A stretch of 63,896 nucleotides of DNA, counting the filler, from Corallochytrium limacisporum Hawaii (taxonomy: Eukaryota; Protista; Pluriformea): the NCBI GenBank assembly GCA_002811645.1. It is 6 parts of 6 records of this genome, joined end to end, with 100 filler letters (N's around TTAATTAATTAA, not from the genome) between each part and the next. Parts side by side here need not be neighbours in the genome. Positions count along the whole stretch, not along the records: positions 15,793 to 22,249 come from PDIP01000158.1; 5 more parts are not named here. One strand, 5' to 3'. A program made the translations under genes and the position numbers. Positions 15,793 to 22,349 of this stretch are shown here, piece after piece (position 1 is the first letter of the stretch; every line of letters begins with the position of its first letter). The notes under the pieces were generated by a model. The model did not search any database. It saw only the letters and a list, made by a program, of their open reading frames with translations, and was not told the origin of the DNA.

Positions 15793-17008
15793 GGGGGGGC
15801 CGAAGAGCGGTGGGCCACACTGGTCACGCAATCCGCCAAAGGCACACAAGAGCGAACTCACCCCTTTTCTAATAGAACCCCCCAAGAAAATAACCAAAAA
15901 GGAGAAATAGAAAGGGAGGAGCAGGGGACCAAAACAGCCAAAGAATCAATGGAAACCCCGACGATAGATACGTAGAAAGAACTCCTTGTAGTACATTGAG
16001 TATGGGGAAATATAAACTGCTCTGGAGCCCTGGTTCTCGCTGAGACTGTCTTTTTGGCCCGTCGGGCAGGGGAAGGGAAGGGGGGAGGGGAACACACGCC
16101 ACGGGGCAAGGGCCAAGGGGAACGAGGAACAGGAGGGAGAGAGAGATGGGAATTTCGCGGACAAAGTGGGAGGGGCTGTTGAACATTTAGTACCGCGGAC
16201 TGCGCCGGCCCAGGAGGAGGGGAAGGGAAGAGGAGAGGAGAGCACCCCCCGGCCCTCCCGGGGGGGAGGGGGGGCAGCGCCACGGATGCTTGAGCTTCTG
16301 GAGAGTATGTGCGCGTGTATCCGGCTTGGTGCCCGTGCCCGTCGTCTCCCGCCACAGGTGAGATCTCCGTTGTGTTTGTTTCAAGCCAGGGTTAATGCGC
16401 CTCTATCTCCATGTACGGCGTCTTTGCACAGGAAGTGTGACAGCAAATGTAGGGGTATGTCTTTGGCACGGATGGATGTTTCATTTGTGGCAGCTCCAGC
16501 GTTTCGTATGTTGCGAGTTTATGCCCTTTCTTGCGGAACTCGATCTCCCTCATTGTGGATGAACTTGTCTCGTTTTGTTAACCTGTATTGACCTGGGCAC
16601 ATAAATTGTTGTCGATAACCAGGGGGGAAAAGAAGTACGGCTTTCCGGTGCAGTGGGTCCCATGGAAGACAGGGGACAGCCGCGGGCTTCGTTGCCAAAT
16701 GAGGTGGCTCAGCATTTAGACTGATGGTTGCATCCTTTATGTGGAATTGTTGACTCCACGTCTTGGTGTTTATGTCGACTGTCCTATTTCAGAAAGTCTG
16801 CGACACCCCACTTCCTCTGGCCTACAACAAACAAGAAACAATGGGTCCACGGTTGGAGTTTTCAGTGTATAGTACACCGAAGGACACACTTGTGGACAGG
16901 GATCCAGGCAAAGTAATTGCACATCACCCACGGCACCAAGCACACTGACAAGGAAGAACAATGAAAGTGTAGCAGGCACGAGGCTCTGTTATAGACCACG
17001 CAAGTACT

Positions 17009-18220
17009 ATGGTAGTGGCAGCATACATTGGGCTAGCCATTGGTGCCTTTGTCCTGTTGGCGATTATTGCTATCGTGGGGCACCGAGCATATCACAAATG
17101 GCTTGATCGACACACTATTGTAACACAAACGAGAGGGATCTCTCGACGTAAGGGATACGGAGGCGGACACCGGCCTGCTAAAGTGCACACCAAACGGAAA
17201 GCAATCGACTCCAAGGGCAAAACATGGAGCGATATAGTGTCACGGCTCCACGGACACGCCCCCAAAAAGGGCTACGTGATCACCATGGATGAATATGAGC
17301 AGCGACTGGAGGACATGGAGCGCATGGAAGCTAAGGTCGGGACGACGGTGGAACAAAACAAGGAAACATCGCGGGGTTCGGAGGATGGCGCAGAGGAATT
17401 TCCCACGGATGCACTAGTAGTTGTCGTGGAAGACACTCGCAAGATACCTAAAGAGCAGCAGGCATCACAGAATAAGGAAGTAGAGAACGCAGTTGCGACC
17501 AACGGGACAACAATAGAGGACAAGCCGACCGTCGCCATCACCAAGAATGCAGAAGGGGCACCGAACGAACACACGAACGAAGGAGTTAGCGAGAATGCCA
17601 GTTTCGACGCAGGCATCGACGATGGGGGCTCTCTTGCCGCAGAGCGGCACTCCCAGTCACCGCATGAGCAGAGTCCGCTGCCAGCACAAAGACCAACTGA
17701 CGAGCAGCTCATGGCTCGCCGCGATGGTAAGCCCTACTACCTCACCACCGGCGCCACTGTCCTTGATGGGCGCATCATTGACGCAGAGGACACGGCCCTC
17801 GACTACGCCGGATTAGACGAAGAAGACGATCCACTATCGGAGCACGAACCGGACGTCATTGTCCATCGTCCATCGCTAGAGGGTGCGGCAGAGATGGAGC
17901 CTGCCGGGATCGCGAACAATTGTGTGGCTCCCACCGCCCACAGCATAAGTGGCCAGGTCCAGGTGCTTGACTCTCTGATGGCGCCCGTGAATAAATCGGT
18001 TGCTTCGCTGAGGCGCACCGGATCGCACGGCAGCGGTAGTCACAGCAGTAACAGCCGCCGTGGCGCACTGAAACTAAGTCCCAGAGCACACAACGCGAAC
18101 ACTGCCGCAGGCGGCAGTTTCAACGCGTCGGATGTCGACGACTGCCCCGATAGTGATGTCAGCTCGCAGCTGTCGACCGTGTCCTTCTCGGAGCAGAAGA
18201 TGAGGTGCGCATCCACGTAG
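17009..18220 (+). CDS. Hypothetical single-pass membrane protein (N-terminal anchor, long acidic/Ser-rich disordered tail)
   Basis: 403-aa ATG ORF. Hydrophobic AAYIGLAIGAFVLLAIIAIVG followed by a basic segment; the rest is polar. No domain recognised. Confidence 0.75.
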   Translation: MVVAAYIGLAIGAFVLLAIIAIVGHRAYHKWLDRHTIVTQTRGISRRKGYGGGHRPAKVHTKRKAIDSKGKTWSDIVSRLHGHAPKKGYVITMDEYEQRLEDMERMEAKVGTTVEQNKETSRGSEDGAEEFPTDALVVVVEDTRKIPKEQQASQNKEVENAVATNGTTIEDKPTVAITKNAEGAPNEHTNEGVSENASFDAGIDDGGSLAAERHSQSPHEQSPLPAQRPTDEQLMARRDGKPYYLTTGATVLDGRIIDAEDTALDYAGLDEEDDPLSEHEPDVIVHRPSLEGAAEMEPAGIANNCVAPTAHSISGQVQVLDSLMAPVNKSVASLRRTGSHGSGSHSSNSRRGALKLSPRAHNANTAAGGSFNASDVDDCPDSDVSSQLSTVSFSEQKMRCAST

Positions 18221-18643
18221 ATCGACAAGGCAGGAATGTTCCGGACTCTCCCCTGGTGGTAACCAGAGCGCCGGAGCATGCCAAACTAACGGATGCTTAT
18301 CCGGAACTGAAGAAATGATGAAGAATTGAAAGGTAGTTAACCTGTAAAGACATCTGTGATCTGACCATACAATGCCGTGACATGAGCGGGGTTGCTTGCC
18401 GTTTTGTATTGGGCACATGTACTTGGAAGTCGGAACATTGTGTGCAAAACCGATGATGGGAAGCTACCCGAACTACGCGGGGAGAGGAGCAAGAGGACGA
18501 TACGGTCAGTGCGTCGCAAAAACAAGGAGAGCAATGAAACGTGTTGAAAATGTGTAAATCGGTAGTGCTATATGGGGAAATCTTTATAGTTGTTCTTGTT
18601 GGGGGTGATGTTATGTTATGGATAAGTGCGGCAGGTAGTGACC

Positions 18644-21475
18644 TCACACCAGTGCGCTCGAGCTCTCCGGGACTCCCATGGACTCAATGTGCCTACTGAC
18701 TCCGGTGGAGCGGCGCCCATCACTACTGCTCGGGCTAGCGGTGAATGACTCTGAGCTTGCCGACTTCTTGTTGCGCTTCTTCACGTACACACCGGCGACT
18801 ACGGCAGCGATGACCACAGCACCACCACACGCAGCAACGGCCGCAATGGCAGCTGTGCTTAGGCCACCATCGGAACTACTAGAGCCCTCGGTGTCGCCGG
18901 TGTCGCCAGTATTCGACGGGGATTCAATTGGCAGGGAGTCGCTTTCCAGGGCGGAGTATTCGAGTGTGTAGCCAGCATCACCAACGGCCTCATTGGCGGC
19001 CAGACGATTGTACACCGCCTCAGTGTTGGTCTGGGCAGTGTCCGCGTCGCTTGCACCCATAAAGAATTCAGTTCGTACCTGGTTGAAGATTTCCTGCTGA
19101 GCAGCGACAGTGTTCTCATCATTATTAGAATTGGAGGCCGTAGCAGCAGTAATGATGACAGAAGAGGGGTCCTCGCCAGCCATTTCAAACATTTTCTGAA
19201 GCTCGTTGACCGCCGCGGACACTGCACCATCTTCAGTGGTTGAGAAGGATTTGGTCACCTTGATGGTGGACGCCGGACGTGGGTACTCGTCAGAGTTGGA
19301 CGCGGTAGTACAGGCGCCGGAGTTGCAATCAACAGAACGGCTGCGTTCCTCCACGCTGGGGCAGAGAGTTCCAAACACGGTTCCTTCCACCAAGATTTCT
19401 TGGGTTTCAATTTGTGTGCATTCCGTGGAGCAGATATCGGCGGGGATGTGATCACCGAGTACACACTCAACGGGACCGGGGCACGGCGCATCCTGACAAT
19501 TTTCGTAGTCAGAGCGCTCTTCGAGTGAGGGGCACTCGGCGCCACCATTAAGTGGCTCCTCTAGAATCTCCTTGACACGGGAGCGACGGCACGTTTCGGT
19601 GCAGTCACCCCACTCACCGTATTCCGTATCAACAACACAGTCCCGGGGACACAAGCCTTCACCGGCATCGCACTCACGGATCTGCTCGTAGTTGCCATCT
19701 TTGATCAGGGTAGCAGGGTCCACCTCGGTGTCGTCCTCGGCGGCGTCATCATTCTGGCGGCGGCGACGTCTCCGCTGGGCAGGAACGTCGTCATCCTGCT
19801 CCGGGCACTCTTCTCCGCCTTCGGTTGGTTCGCTTACGATTCTGCGGGTGCGAGAAGACGTACAGGTACTGTCGCACGCGGACCAGACGGACCACTCAGA
19901 CAGGACGCAATCGGCGGGACACAGACCTTGGCCAGCCTCGCAGACTTCCTCGCTGGTCTCTTCCAATTCCGGGCATTGTAGAGGTCCCTCGGGTTCCTGT
20001 GTGACGGTTCGATTGCGGATTCCGACGCACTGTTCGTTACATTCCCACTCGGACCATTCGGATACCTCGCAAGAACGGGGTTCACCGGAGCAAATGGCAC
20101 CAGAGCAACTGTCGCCCGCGCGTGCAAAGATCTTAAGCGAGCTCTGGGGGCTGATGTAGTACCAGCGGGTGAAATCCGGACCGTGCCAGTAGCTCTGGCT
20201 GGGCTCAGGAAGGGTGCCAGTGGCCAAAGGTAGGTAGTCAAGACCGGTGACTGGCACGAGGCACTCCTTTTCACGTGAGAAGATGTAGAATCCCTTGAAG
20301 CTCCCGTCAGCGTTATACTCCGTGGTAGCTCCAATACCGCAGTCAATACGCGCCTCCCGGCTGTAAAGGTTGTCGTCAATATAATAGTCGCCATAAGCGC
20401 CGATGGCGCACACGCAGGTTCCCTTGTTTTCTCCACCGGGGCATGTGCAGCCTCCTGGGGCAACAGGGAAGCTTGTGTCGGCTGCAAATGCATTCATGTT
20501 GGTGGTGAAACGACCGCCACCGCCCGTACAGAAGAAGCTTAACTGGGTGCACAGTTCGGAGCGGATCTCAGGGAACTTCTGCCAATTTACGACCTGGTTA
20601 AAATTATGGGTACGTCTGGCACCGGGCCAGTAAGGTCCCATGGCCCAGTCAGCCATATACAACACGGCGTAAATGGCAGCGCGCTTCCAGAAGCCCGCCT
20701 CAATGTGCAATGCCATGGCCATGGGACCACCAGTTGTCTTGTGATACCCCAGGACTGTCTTGCCCCCGCTGACGAGAATAGGAGTGTCCGCCGGGCCAGG
20801 AAATACCGGCTGGTTAGTCTGAACACCGGTCTCAGCAAAGTTATAGCCAACCCATTCATTGATGATCGTAGAGAAATTGTGGAGCTGTGGGGTTGAGACC
20901 ACAGCACCGGCCTCAGCACCGGACAGCCTACCGGCTGCCGTGGCGCCGTCAAAGTAGTCCAGGCTGTCAGGACTCATCCAGATGAGCTTAATCTTGTCAT
21001 TTCCGTACTTATTGATGTAGTCAAAAATAGCCTGAAATTCGTCCGGACGCATGATCTGGCGGAGAGCTCCAAACCCTTCCTGCTGACCGAAGAGGGTGGA
21101 CGTGATCACGATAACGCTGTAGCGGGCATGGCCATCGGAATTCTCAAGGTCAGTCGCAAAGTTAAAGTCAATAGAGGAGTACCAGGGAACAAAGCAGCAA
21201 GTGGGCTCCCCATACTGGTCGCCAATACTCTGGGCGGGGTCTTCGCGCTGAATGTACCGACGGTCGTCGTTGTATGTGTTCCGCTGCCCAATAACAGCCA
21301 CCTCGTAAGGGAAACCAGCCCACTCAAAAATAAACTGGATGGCTTCTGGCACTGGATAGTGCAAATACCTGTCGTTGGTCTTAGTGTCCTTTTTGATGAT
21401 CAGCGCACGAGAGTCAACGCCCATACCGAGGGCCATATTGACCATGGCGAAGAGGAGAACAAATGGGTAAATCAT
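18644..21475 (-). CDS. Type I membrane protein: signal peptide, Agd3 N-terminal (CBM87-like) region, Cys-rich region, four spondin-type TSP1 repeats, stalk, TM helix, short tail
   Basis: 943-aa ORF. Signal MIYPFVLLFAMVNMALG. N-terminal ALII..AGFPYEV..RYSVIVIT..DEFQAIFDYINKYG..KLIW and DWAMG..PGARR...NQV recall the Agd3 N-terminus. TSRs CEVSEWSEW, CVLSEWSVWSAC, CVV..YGEWGDC, CVLG. TM GLSTAAIAAVAACGGAVVIAAVVAGVYV followed by KKRNKK. Confidence 0.85.
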   Translation of the reverse strand: MIYPFVLLFAMVNMALGMGVDSRALIIKKDTKTNDRYLHYPVPEAIQFIFEWAGFPYEVAVIGQRNTYNDDRRYIQREDPAQSIGDQYGEPTCCFVPWYSSIDFNFATDLENSDGHARYSVIVITSTLFGQQEGFGALRQIMRPDEFQAIFDYINKYGNDKIKLIWMSPDSLDYFDGATAAGRLSGAEAGAVVSTPQLHNFSTIINEWVGYNFAETGVQTNQPVFPGPADTPILVSGGKTVLGYHKTTGGPMAMALHIEAGFWKRAAIYAVLYMADWAMGPYWPGARRTHNFNQVVNWQKFPEIRSELCTQLSFFCTGGGGRFTTNMNAFAADTSFPVAPGGCTCPGGENKGTCVCAIGAYGDYYIDDNLYSREARIDCGIGATTEYNADGSFKGFYIFSREKECLVPVTGLDYLPLATGTLPEPSQSYWHGPDFTRWYYISPQSSLKIFARAGDSCSGAICSGEPRSCEVSEWSEWECNEQCVGIRNRTVTQEPEGPLQCPELEETSEEVCEAGQGLCPADCVLSEWSVWSACDSTCTSSRTRRIVSEPTEGGEECPEQDDDVPAQRRRRRRQNDDAAEDDTEVDPATLIKDGNYEQIRECDAGEGLCPRDCVVDTEYGEWGDCTETCRRSRVKEILEEPLNGGAECPSLEERSDYENCQDAPCPGPVECVLGDHIPADICSTECTQIETQEILVEGTVFGTLCPSVEERSRSVDCNSGACTTASNSDEYPRPASTIKVTKSFSTTEDGAVSAAVNELQKMFEMAGEDPSSVIITAATASNSNNDENTVAAQQEIFNQVRTEFFMGASDADTAQTNTEAVYNRLAANEAVGDAGYTLEYSALESDSLPIESPSNTGDTGDTEGSSSSDGGLSTAAIAAVAACGGAVVIAAVVAGVYVKKRNKKSASSESFTASPSSSDGRRSTGVSRHIESMGVPESSSALV

Positions 21476-22349
21476 GTTGGCTGTGTTCTCTTGGTCTCCT
21501 GGAGAAAAGTTTTGCTTATGACTCGCAAGACCCGAAAAATCTGTGGAGCTTGCGTTGCGTGTGAACTCCTTCGGTTTGTATGAACAAGATGGACCTGGGC
21601 TGGAAGTGTTGAGACCTGCTCAAGCGATGTCCAGGATTCCTGTGTTTGTTCCTTGCTCCTGGGAGGCGAGGTCTCAGAGGGTTCTGAAAAGACGTACCCT
21701 TGCATCTTTATGCTACCCTCCACCACAAAGTTGAGGGATCCCTGAACTACCTTGTTGCAAGCGCACTGAGAAGATGAACTATACTTAGTCTGAGTCTGTG
21801 CTCTTGCTAACGCGGCAAACGCGACAGTGATAAACGATTGTCTGTCTTGCTTGAAGATCCGGCTACGCTGCGGGAGATAGACCAGGCTTTCCTCGAGAAG
21901 AATGTCCTCGCCTCTCTCCAGATCTTCAGCGCACACTAGGTGCTACCTCAAATGGTTGTACGCTTAGCCAAATTGCATCAGAGGACACTGAACAAAGTGT
22001 CTCGTACGCAATATGTTCTCCAGCCACCAGAGCGCTCTCAACTGGCTCGCGTGTAAGCTTGGCATATGCGCAAGAGGCCCCGAAGGAGAAACAAAGAAAA
22101 AAACCCTAACAAAACTGATAGTGGGGAGGTCGAAATGAGAAAGTAGGGGGAGAAAAACAAGAAAAAAAGGGGGAAGGGGGGAAAAGCAAGGAATTCTCCA
22201 AATTTCCGGAGCGAGAGATGCCCTCATCTCTGTTTCCCTCCCTCCCCCCNNNNNNNNNNNNNNNNNNNNNNNNNNNNNNNNNNNNNNNNNNNNTTAATTA
22301 ATTAANNNNNNNNNNNNNNNNNNNNNNNNNNNNNNNNNNNNNNNNNNNN

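Follow-up and report, generated by a model that had tools for sequence, protein, structure and literature searches.

An enzyme-less Agd3-like head on a thrombospondin-repeat surface protein of Corallochytrium limacisporum: a possible polysaccharide receptor or adhesin

Introduction

Can the carbohydrate-binding domain of an exopolysaccharide deacetylase be displayed at a cell surface without the enzyme that it accompanies? This question is raised by a locus of Corallochytrium limacisporum (strain Hawaii) whose product, P0001, had been described in a first-pass annotation as a non-catalytic Agd3-derived region fused to thrombospondin repeats (TSRs) and a membrane anchor. Agd3 of Aspergillus fumigatus is composed of a CBM87 domain, a CE18 domain and a C-terminal beta-sandwich (PDB 6NWZ), and every homologue examined in the Agd3 study had the CBM87 fold together with deacetylase domains (PMC7229062). 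The window analysed here is a stretch of 63,896 nucleotides, filler included, in which six parts of assembly GCA_002811645.1 are joined end to end; the P0001 gene lies in the piece from PDIP01000158.1. We put at roughly 55% the probability that P0001 is a surface protein in which an enzyme-less Agd3-like head, carried on TSRs, acts as a polysaccharide receptor or adhesin.

Results

P0001 is most likely an expressed type I membrane protein

An intact, unspliced ORF of 943 aa plus stop occupies positions 18644-21475 of the window on the minus strand, on which all features described below also lie. The ORF listing contains precisely the frame given in the first-pass annotation, whose domain coordinates (residues 23-298 at 20582-21409 and residues 469-722 at 19310-20071) were likewise correct. 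The complete single-exon coding sequence is covered without joints by contigs of two 2015 RNA-like runs; the RNA label of these runs is a guess by the tool, hence we refer to the contigs as transcript-like. They extend over 18637-21667 (X4 contig, 18637-21667; X3 contigs, 18663-19445 and 19461-21569), include a ~190-nt 5' leader, and abut at their 3' end the transcript of the convergent neighbour. In both runs the contigs cover the P0001 gene and the neighbour gene and not the intergenic stretches, with cover absent at 21668-22249 and 16300-16826.

A putative signal peptide (residues 1-19; 21419-21475) is marked by a hydrophobic segment at residues 1-20, and the hydrophobic N-terminus is similar in all paralogues. 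Toward the other end, an acidic, Ser/Thr/Asn-rich stalk (residues 723-871; 18863-19309), for which no Pfam family was matched, shows weak collinear similarity to the stalk of the paralogue P0002 (E 0.026). The stalk leads into a predicted transmembrane helix (residues 872-898; 18782-18862), seen as a hydropathy peak of 2.52 at residues 870-900 followed by K-K-R-N-K-K, and then, from the translation and hydropathy scan, into a Ser-rich cytoplasmic tail of 45 aa ending in A-L-V (residues 899-943; 18647-18781). P0001 is most likely a type I membrane protein that this unicellular holozoan expresses.

Three clear thrombospondin repeats and a degenerate fourth

Pfam TSP1_spondin (PF19028) matched P0001 in three stretches with 73.5 bits against a cut-off of 41 (E 1.6e-20). 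When units were scanned singly, TSR 1 (residues 469-520; 19916-20071), with a W-S-E-W motif, gave E 5.4e-6 over residues 469-514; TSR 2 (residues 521-611; 19643-19915), with a W-S-V-W motif, gave E 5.3e-12 over residues 523-562 and also matched TSP_1 (E 0.0013); and TSR 3 (residues 612-668; 19472-19642) gave E 4.9e-10 over residues 613-665, spanning model positions 1-52 of 52. The motif scan placed WxxW-type motifs at residues 474, 528 and 619. Four spondin-type repeats had been claimed earlier: three are clear, and the fourth (residues 669-722; 19310-19471) is degenerate, with residues 671-722 aligning over the whole model (1-52 of 52) at E 0.036. In this unit the Cys framework is retained and the Trp layer lost, and an equivalent unit is present in P0002. 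TSR 2 is interrupted by a charged insertion of ~40 aa, in which the motif scan found a run of six arginines (residues 568-573; 19757-19774), a possible dibasic-protease cleavage site.

The P0001 TSRs align with those of UNC5B and F-spondin, and P0001 shares spondin-type TSRs, WxxW motifs and the six-Cys framework with animal TSR proteins (F-spondin, UNC5, thrombospondins), but is without their EGF, laminin-G/L-lectin, reelin/spondin or Ig/death domains. To our knowledge, the head domain of P0001 does not occur in animal TSR proteins.

The head belongs to a small paralogous family and is homologous to the Agd3 N-terminal domain

When 1.84 billion representatives were searched exhaustively, only four relatives emerged, all of them C. 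limacisporum paralogues. Word-indexed searches are blind at this family's divergence: P0001 as the query returned only itself and missed P0002, and the family alignment returned no match at E up to 10. All five paralogues have the same head, followed by a family-specific Cys-rich/beta-rich module; the P0001 head is 23-29% identical to the other four, with 26 invariant positions. Their stalks differ, consisting of TSRs, of a TSR plus thrombospondin type 3 repeats (nine in P0005), or of bare low-complexity sequence with a transmembrane helix or a likely GPI signal.

The likeness of the head (residues 20-298; 20582-21418) to Agd3 was not visible to a single-sequence search, in which phmmer with the N-terminal 460 aa found no relevant match in the PDB. 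Pfam CBM87_Agd3 (PF25116), the only Pfam match to the N-domain, scored E 0.067 and 13.4 bits, below its 27.6 cut-off, and was seen in just one of the five paralogues. A profile of the five paralogues, however, picked out Agd3 (6nwz_A) among 177,635 PDB sequences at E 2.1e-5, with the next match at 0.17, and a leave-one-out profile built without P0001 had 6nwz_A as its sole match (E 2.4e-4). The profile alignment is collinear over ~190 residues (Agd3 residues 189-379) and stops at catalytic motif 1, which is where the likeness had been said to end; here the family stretch W-x-G-x-R-R ... V-V-N-W aligns with Agd3 ...G-H-R-R-V-N-L-N-T-Q-I-D-D-M, so that G-x-R-R before motif 1 is shared. Identity to Agd3 is below 20%, and Agd3 is secreted whereas P0001 is membrane-anchored via TSRs. 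A search of ESM Atlas features with the head gave only unrelated bacterial clusters (0.93-0.94, few shared features).

AF2 modelling of P0001 gave a pLDDT of 33 from the single sequence and, with the five-sequence alignment, a mean pLDDT of 45 and a pTM of 0.54. In the comparison with Agd3 CBM87 that the first-pass annotation had proposed, VIA-align of this low-confidence model (pLDDT 45) against 48,161 PDB representatives ranked Agd3 145-347 first and as the only chain with Z of at least 8 (Z 8.1, rmsd 3.5, 112 aligned), a Z within the range often reached by models without true relatives. With the same model and set of chains, the NDST1 N-terminal domain came second (Z 6.6-7.4) and a class I glutamine amidotransferase fourth. 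Foldseek against the PDB gave no significant match, with 6nwz_A at rank 3 (E 0.18). The ranking is consistent with what has been reported on the CBM87/NDST1 fold (PMC7229062; PMC10864358). Together, the two family profiles and the fold ranking bear out the earlier assignment of residues ~23-298 as Agd3-like and support homology of the P0001 N-terminal domain with the N-terminal CBM87 domain of Agd3. Taken jointly, the architecture and this homology are, in our view, very probable.

The NDST1 N-terminal domain (residues 79-307; PDB 8CD0, 9F6Z) belongs to the same fold family as CBM87 and, as P0001 does, comes from the holozoan lineage; the P0001 head would be the same module as precedes the deacetylase in animal NDST1. 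At the sequence level, neither family profile matched NDST1 in the PDB at E <=10. The NDST1 domain differs in its setting: it is joined to a sulfotransferase and a deacetylase that is active, is Golgi-located and has an occluded cleft. We know of no function assigned to it.

Convergence on a flavodoxin/Rossmann-like three-layer fold, such as a vWA-like head, without common descent, would offer another explanation of the Agd3 likeness. Integrin I and vWA domains, flavodoxins and TIR domains do reach Z 4-5, the AF2 model is of low confidence, and the layout of an alpha/beta head, TSRs, stalk, TM helix and short tail resembles that of TRAP. This explanation is nonetheless highly improbable, given that profiles independent of the model single out Agd3 twice, that the alignment remains collinear up to motif 1, and that the top two fold matches belong to a single superfamily, of which they are the known members. 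A vWA/TRAP-like head in particular was rejected, as Pfam gave no VWA match and the profiles chose Agd3.

The deacetylase has been lost

Catalytic motif 1 of Agd3 comprises the base D377 and the metal ligand D378. These correspond to V296 and N297 in P0001 and to WN, TN, TN and WY in the four other paralogues. About 170 aa separate motif 1 from TSR 1, as against a 369-aa barrel in Agd3, and residues 299-468 contain a single His, hence no HxxxH. P0001 is missing the CE18 features, namely the distorted (beta/alpha)7 barrel and equivalents of HxxxH (H510/H514), R613 and H668, and neither Pfam nor the PDB gave a match to the Agd3 CE domain. The replacement of DD by VN and the absence of the deacetylase barrel, both proposed previously, are thereby confirmed. 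With neither catalytic aspartate retained and no CE18 barrel, P0001, judged from its sequence, cannot be an Agd3-type deacetylase.

What occupies the place of the barrel is a Cys-rich, then beta-rich module (residues 299-468; 20072-20581), which the alignments show to be conserved in all five paralogues. Its 11 Cys agree with the Cys-rich region annotated earlier; the stalk, TM helix and short tail of that annotation were also recovered, by the hydropathy scan. The module has no Pfam family, its profile gave one weak match, to Lap adhesin repeats (6xi3; E 0.0015), and the ESM Atlas feature search gave no usable lead. Its derivation from the CE barrel or the C-terminal beta-sandwich of Agd3 is unsupported, with no Agd3 match in the PDB or Pfam, and no Agd3 C-terminal domain was detectable anywhere in P0001 with these databases.

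P0001 might be a pseudoenzyme that works alongside an active Agd3-like deacetylase: its membrane-anchored head would catch the nascent polymer at the cell surface and either present it to the secreted enzyme or compete with that enzyme, and so tune the degree of deacetylation. Its head does derive from the enzyme's substrate-positioning module (PMC7229062), and Agd3 copies nearby were reported, by the first-pass annotation only. Against such a role, which we regard as improbable, the ORFs of the piece carrying P0001 include no Agd3 gene, and a set of five paralogues that differ in their stalks suggests a receptor/adhesin family more than one dedicated cofactor. The head-to-head Agd3 copy A of the first-pass annotation would lie beyond this piece, at whose right edge no ORF is cut off.

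One of three mapped glycan-binding residues is retained

In Agd3, mutation of D242, W292 or W344 weakens GAG binding, with W344 having the largest effect among the CBM residues (PMC7229062). P0001 keeps one of the three, W344 (W263), and has M and T in place of D242 and W292. Across the five paralogues, the position of D242 holds M/N/N/K/Q and that of W292 holds T/S/Y/Y/F, in the stretch where the HMM alignment is least certain, while the W344 position holds W/W/F/Y/F and is therefore aromatic in all five. We rate the prediction that the P0001 head binds a glycan as somewhat short of an even chance.

P0001 could also be a general TSR surface adhesin or receptor, its Agd3-derived head having ceased to bind sugar and now engaging a protein or other ligand or forming a structural cap. 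The two unconserved GAG-binding positions fit this reading, as do the adhesive nature of TSRs in themselves, the fast evolution of the head between strains (see below), and NDST1, in which the equivalent cleft is occluded and the domain may serve oligomerisation (PMC10864358). The aromatic residue kept at the W344 position speaks for sugar binding instead, and carbohydrate binding is the only biochemically tested function of the CBM87 fold family (PMC7229062). We consider loss of sugar binding a serious contender, if an unlikely one; P0001 would in that case simply be a lineage-specific TSR protein of unusual ancestry.

Differences between two strains are concentrated in the P0001 head

P0001 shows 16 differences between two strains, 11 of which fall within the first 298 codons, making the head its most polymorphic part. 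This fits relaxed constraint as well as it fits a fast-evolving binding surface. The whole-gene pN/pS of ~0.65, which is drawn from these 16 differences only, would also suit a decaying, functionless remnant of a truncated Agd3 gene. That origin has a very small probability in our estimate: the 943-codon frame is intact in both strains and lies under transcript-like contigs; the signal peptide, TSR Cys frameworks and TM helix are all there; and the head is kept, with its invariant positions, in four paralogues.

Discussion

Based on these data, we propose that P0001 plausibly serves as an adhesin or matrix receptor. Its head would be the ligand-binding part and the remainder a display scaffold, in which the TSR rod and glycosylatable stalk could raise the head to tens of nanometres from the membrane. 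In that position the head would bind a hexosamine-rich extracellular polysaccharide and leave it unmodified; this ligand could be a polymer of the cell's own matrix or wall, or one present on a substrate. That the head may tether a polysaccharide to the cell, as the first-pass annotation suggested, is a reasonable hypothesis and not a finding.

More tentatively, and with considerable doubt, the family could reflect an independent pre-animal invention, in which a holozoan freed the substrate-binding module of an exopolysaccharide deacetylase from the enzyme and distributed this module among TSR and thrombospondin type 3 surface proteins, generating lineage-specific matrix-polysaccharide receptors; the superfamily of this module would also have given animals the heparan-sulfate enzyme NDST. 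A free-standing, membrane-displayed CBM87-like module in P0001 would demonstrate that such a module is able to function by itself, and it could serve as a natural probe of polymers rich in hexosamine. C. limacisporum is among the few stably transfectable unicellular holozoans (bioRxiv 10.1101/2020.11.12.379420), and localisation and loss-of-function tests of this TSR-based surface family are therefore feasible in a near single-celled relative of animals. This bears on the use of extracellular-matrix-type domains before animals became multicellular.

The three-layer alpha/beta head, TSRs, low-complexity stalk, single TM helix and short tail of P0001 are reminiscent of the apicomplexan TRAP/MIC2-family adhesins, in which a vWA head is followed by TSR, stalk, TM helix and short tail. 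In these gliding adhesins the vWA/I-domain head has a MIDAS site, and the tail is acidic with a sub-terminal Trp. The P0001 head is not a vWA domain (integrin I domains reach only ~Z 4), and any likeness between these unrelated lineages is a matter of convergence. The P0001 tail lacks Trp and, far from being acidic, is basic as well as Ser-rich; together with the hydrophobic C-terminus, it may serve trafficking or cytoplasmic coupling.

Domain organization and expression of P0001

P0001, a 943-residue protein with thrombospondin type 1 repeats (TSRs), is an expressed protein of predicted type I surface topology, with an enzyme-less Agd3-type module at its tip, three or four TSRs beneath this and then a stalk. 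A signal peptide (residues 1–19) and an N-terminal domain (20–298) are followed by a module of 11 cysteines and then predicted β-strands (299–468; window 20072–20581, minus strand). The first-pass annotation had placed each part of the protein correctly, including the Cys-rich region, and had counted four spondin-type TSRs; three of these are clear (TSR 1, residues 469–520, E 5e-6; TSR 2, 521–611, E 5e-12; TSR 3, 612–668, E 5e-10), but TSR 4 (669–722) is degenerate, aligning over its full length at E 0.036 with the Trp layer lost. The stalk, TM helix and short tail were likewise located: an acidic Ser/Thr/Asn-rich stalk (723–871; window 18863–19309, minus strand), a TM helix followed by K-K-R-N-K-K (872–898), and a Ser-rich tail of 45 residues ending in A-L-V (899–943). 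With 73.5 bits for the whole protein against TSP1_spondin (Pfam cut-off 41), P0001 is, by profile score, a bona fide TSR protein.

The gene, found in the ORF list of the piece at window 15793–22249, is a minus-strand ORF of 943 codons (window 18644–21475). Contigs of two 2015 runs (RNA label guessed) cover it, those of X4 over window 18637–21667 and those of X3 over 18663–19445 and 19461–21569, with no joints seen in either. Both runs also have contigs over the neighbouring gene (16827/16845 to 18572/18605), and neither covers window 16300–16826 or 21668–22249. Since coverage of genes with uncovered spacers is the pattern of transcripts, the P0001 gene is taken as expressed and intron-less, the RNA label of the runs being a guess.

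One RNA-like run shows no difference from the window. The other has 16 differences in the CDS (11 non-synonymous, 5 synonymous), and the frame stays intact. The two runs, about 0.5% apart, fit the two known strains of the marine holozoan C. limacisporum, from India and Hawaii. Eleven of the 16 differences, 7 of them non-synonymous, fall in the first 298 codons (window 20582–21475; binomial p 0.0025), and only two lie in the TSR block; whole-gene pN/pS is ~0.65, from small counts. A binding surface that evolves fast would give this pattern, and so would relaxed constraint. With this pN/pS on one side and transcript cover and an intact frame on the other, a dead gene is barely credible.

A lineage-specific family with a constant head

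An exhaustive phmmer search with P0001 residues 20–460 against 1.84 billion cluster representatives matched only four other proteins (E 5e-31, 1e-28, 5e-22 and 9e-4), all EukProt Clim_evm entries bearing the prefix of C. limacisporum gene models. The head was found in this one species only, in a search whose query was a single sequence rather than a profile, so that more distant members may exist. The five proteins share the head (P0001 residues 20–468) at 23–29% identity to P0001, with 26 invariant positions, and diverge in layout downstream of it. P0002 has the layout of P0001, while in P0003 the head is followed by a stalk of low complexity and then a TM helix. In P0004 (Clim_evm67s218), a Thr/Ser/Asp-rich stalk leads to a terminal hydrophobic stretch (589–612), and there is no cytoplasmic tail; the stretch resembles a GPI-anchor signal more than a TM helix. 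In P0005 (Clim_evm51s195), the head is followed over residues ~508–940 by a single TSR and nine repeats of TSP type 3 (Pfam TSP_3 E 1e-50), and then by a TM helix. In a unicellular holozoan, this pairing of TSR and TSP3 recalls the thrombospondins of animals. P0001 thus belongs to a five-gene lineage-specific family in which the head is kept and the stalk varied. Because the head is constant and the stalks interchangeable, this arrangement argues that the head carries the family's function.

The head is related to the N-terminal module of Agd3

As a single sequence, P0001 had no PDB match, and the only Pfam family reported for its N-terminal domain was a faint CBM87_Agd3 (E 0.067, residues 110–162 on model positions 44–95). 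The five-member profile, searched against 177,635 distinct PDB sequences, gave one significant match, to the Aspergillus fumigatus deacetylase Agd3 (6nwz_A; E 2.1e-5, 27 bits), with the next match at E 0.17; a profile built without P0001 again matched 6nwz_A alone in the PDB (E 2.4e-4). The match spans Agd3 189–379 (residue numbers in the PDB chain run 122 below those published, as checked on W170 = W292 and D255/D256 = D377/D378). It thus takes in most of CBM87, which comprises residues 141–364 (PMC7229062), and the first CE strand up to catalytic motif 1.

An AF2 model from the five-sequence alignment is poor (pLDDT 45, pTM 0.54). Foldseek found no significant match for it, Agd3 ranking third with the highest probability (0.69). 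VIA-align over the top 1000 Foldseek chains placed Agd3 145–347 first (Z 8.1, rmsd 3.5, 112 aligned), and when 48,161 representatives were compared without Foldseek it again ranked first, the sole chain at Z ≥ 8. The second match, the N-terminal domain of the animal heparan-sulfate enzyme NDST1 (human; Z 6.6–7.4), corresponds to the Agd3 CBM, the two enzymes being homologous (PMC10864358). A class I glutamine amidotransferase comes fourth; it was to this fold that the Agd3 authors likened CBM87 (PMC7229062). The model-based fold evidence is weaker than the profile evidence, yet independent of the profile alignment, and Z 8 from such a model is not by itself decisive. Fold convergence is the other way to read the likeness. 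We take it as decisive that the two sequence-profile searches agree with the two top fold matches, give homology a probability of about 0.85, and hold convergence to be highly improbable. The Agd3-like layout annotated for residues ~23–298 is borne out by the same searches.

Loss of catalytic residues and partial conservation of the cleft

Agd3 D377 and D378, the base and a metal ligand (PMC7229062), align to V296-N297 in P0001 and to WN, TN, TN and WY in the paralogues. Between the motif 1 equivalent and TSR 1 lie ~170 residues with a single His, where Agd3 has a 369-residue barrel with H510/H514, R613 and H668 (PMC7229062). A profile of residues 299–468 matched neither the CE nor the C-terminal domain of Agd3 in the PDB, and the region has no Pfam family. 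The replacement of DD by VN and the absence of the barrel, both annotated earlier, were confirmed. Judged from the sequence, Agd3-type deacetylase activity is excluded and P0001 is not a CE18 enzyme. In the Agd3 study, all homologues examined had the CBM fold, in each case within a three-domain deacetylase (PMC7229062), and no description of a free-standing CBM87-type module was found in the papers searched. P0001 might instead be the partner of an active deacetylase, which we consider improbable. Our literature search found no paper tying Corallochytrium to Agd3, to its GalNAc/GalN polymer GAG or to CE18.

The 299–468 profile also matched, weakly and more than once (E 0.0015), the Ig-like repeats of a Lap adhesin from bacterial biofilms (PDB 6xi3), around a T-x-x-x-D-G-S-Y-x-L-x-G motif. 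The match hints at a β-sandwich in the second half of the module.

In Agd3, D242A, W292A and W344A weaken GAG binding, W344A most strongly (PMC7229062). In the HMM alignment, which is least certain in the middle stretch holding D242 and W292, W344 corresponds to W263 of P0001 (W, W, F, Y, F across P0001–P0005), W292 to Thr (T, S, Y, Y, F) and D242 to Met (M, N, N, K, Q). The predicted cleft is partly conserved across the paralogues, least in P0001. Because the head is related to CBM87 but departs from it at these residues, it is called CBM87-like, not a CBM87 member. Sugar binding by the P0001 head is an inference; with W263 retained and the other two positions changed, a head repurposed for a non-glycan role is possible, though less likely.

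Proposed working of P0001

We propose that the CBM87-like head binds, but does not modify, a polysaccharide rich in hexosamine, that the TSR rod and stalk hold it away from the membrane, and that P0001 would act as a matrix receptor or adhesin. In this it may be likened to an adhesin scaffold that displays a CBM; its likeness to TRAP/MIC2 is one of layout only.

TSR 2 is split by a charged, acidic insertion of ~40 residues holding six consecutive Arg (residues 568–573; window 19757–19774, minus strand), which the equivalent TSR of P0002 does not have. The stretch may be a dibasic-protease processing site and may permit head shedding. The four TM-anchored paralogues have C-termini of small hydrophobic residues (A-L-V in P0001, window 18647–18655, minus strand; T-V-L, V-D-V and N-V-V in P0002, P0003 and P0005); they may be ER-export signals or PDZ-ligand-type C-termini, serving ER export or PDZ-type coupling. 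The P0001 stalk shows weak collinear similarity to P0002 ~750–860 (BLASTP E 0.026), and hydrophobic patterns alternate there. Next to the membrane, these stalks may include a small folded domain and not low-complexity sequence alone.

Neighbouring sequence and environmental matches

The convergent neighbour (17009–18220, plus strand, 403 codons) encodes a protein with a hydrophobic N-terminal anchor (~2–24), a long acidic Ser-rich low-complexity remainder and no Pfam family, and is expressed in both RNA-like runs. Its gene abuts or overlaps the TSR gene at their 3′ ends, where short high-depth X4 contigs lie (18576–18666). Agd3 copy A, which the first-pass annotation placed head-to-head with the P0001 gene, would lie beyond the piece; the 775 bases upstream of the P0001 gene hold neither an ORF that continues past the edge nor any RNA cover. 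At window 16968–16997, contigs of the DNA run break, one with a loose end reading TGTCTCTTATACACATCTG, which we recognise as the tail of a Nextera adapter; the site is bridged in both strains by RNA-like contigs, so the window sequence is continuous there.

Several marine metagenomes contain 5–7% of the words of the P0001 gene. A 264-nt contig of the coral-reef metagenome run X8 matches window 19468–19731 with 2 differences (99% identity), which places C. limacisporum or a very close relative in the reef sample.
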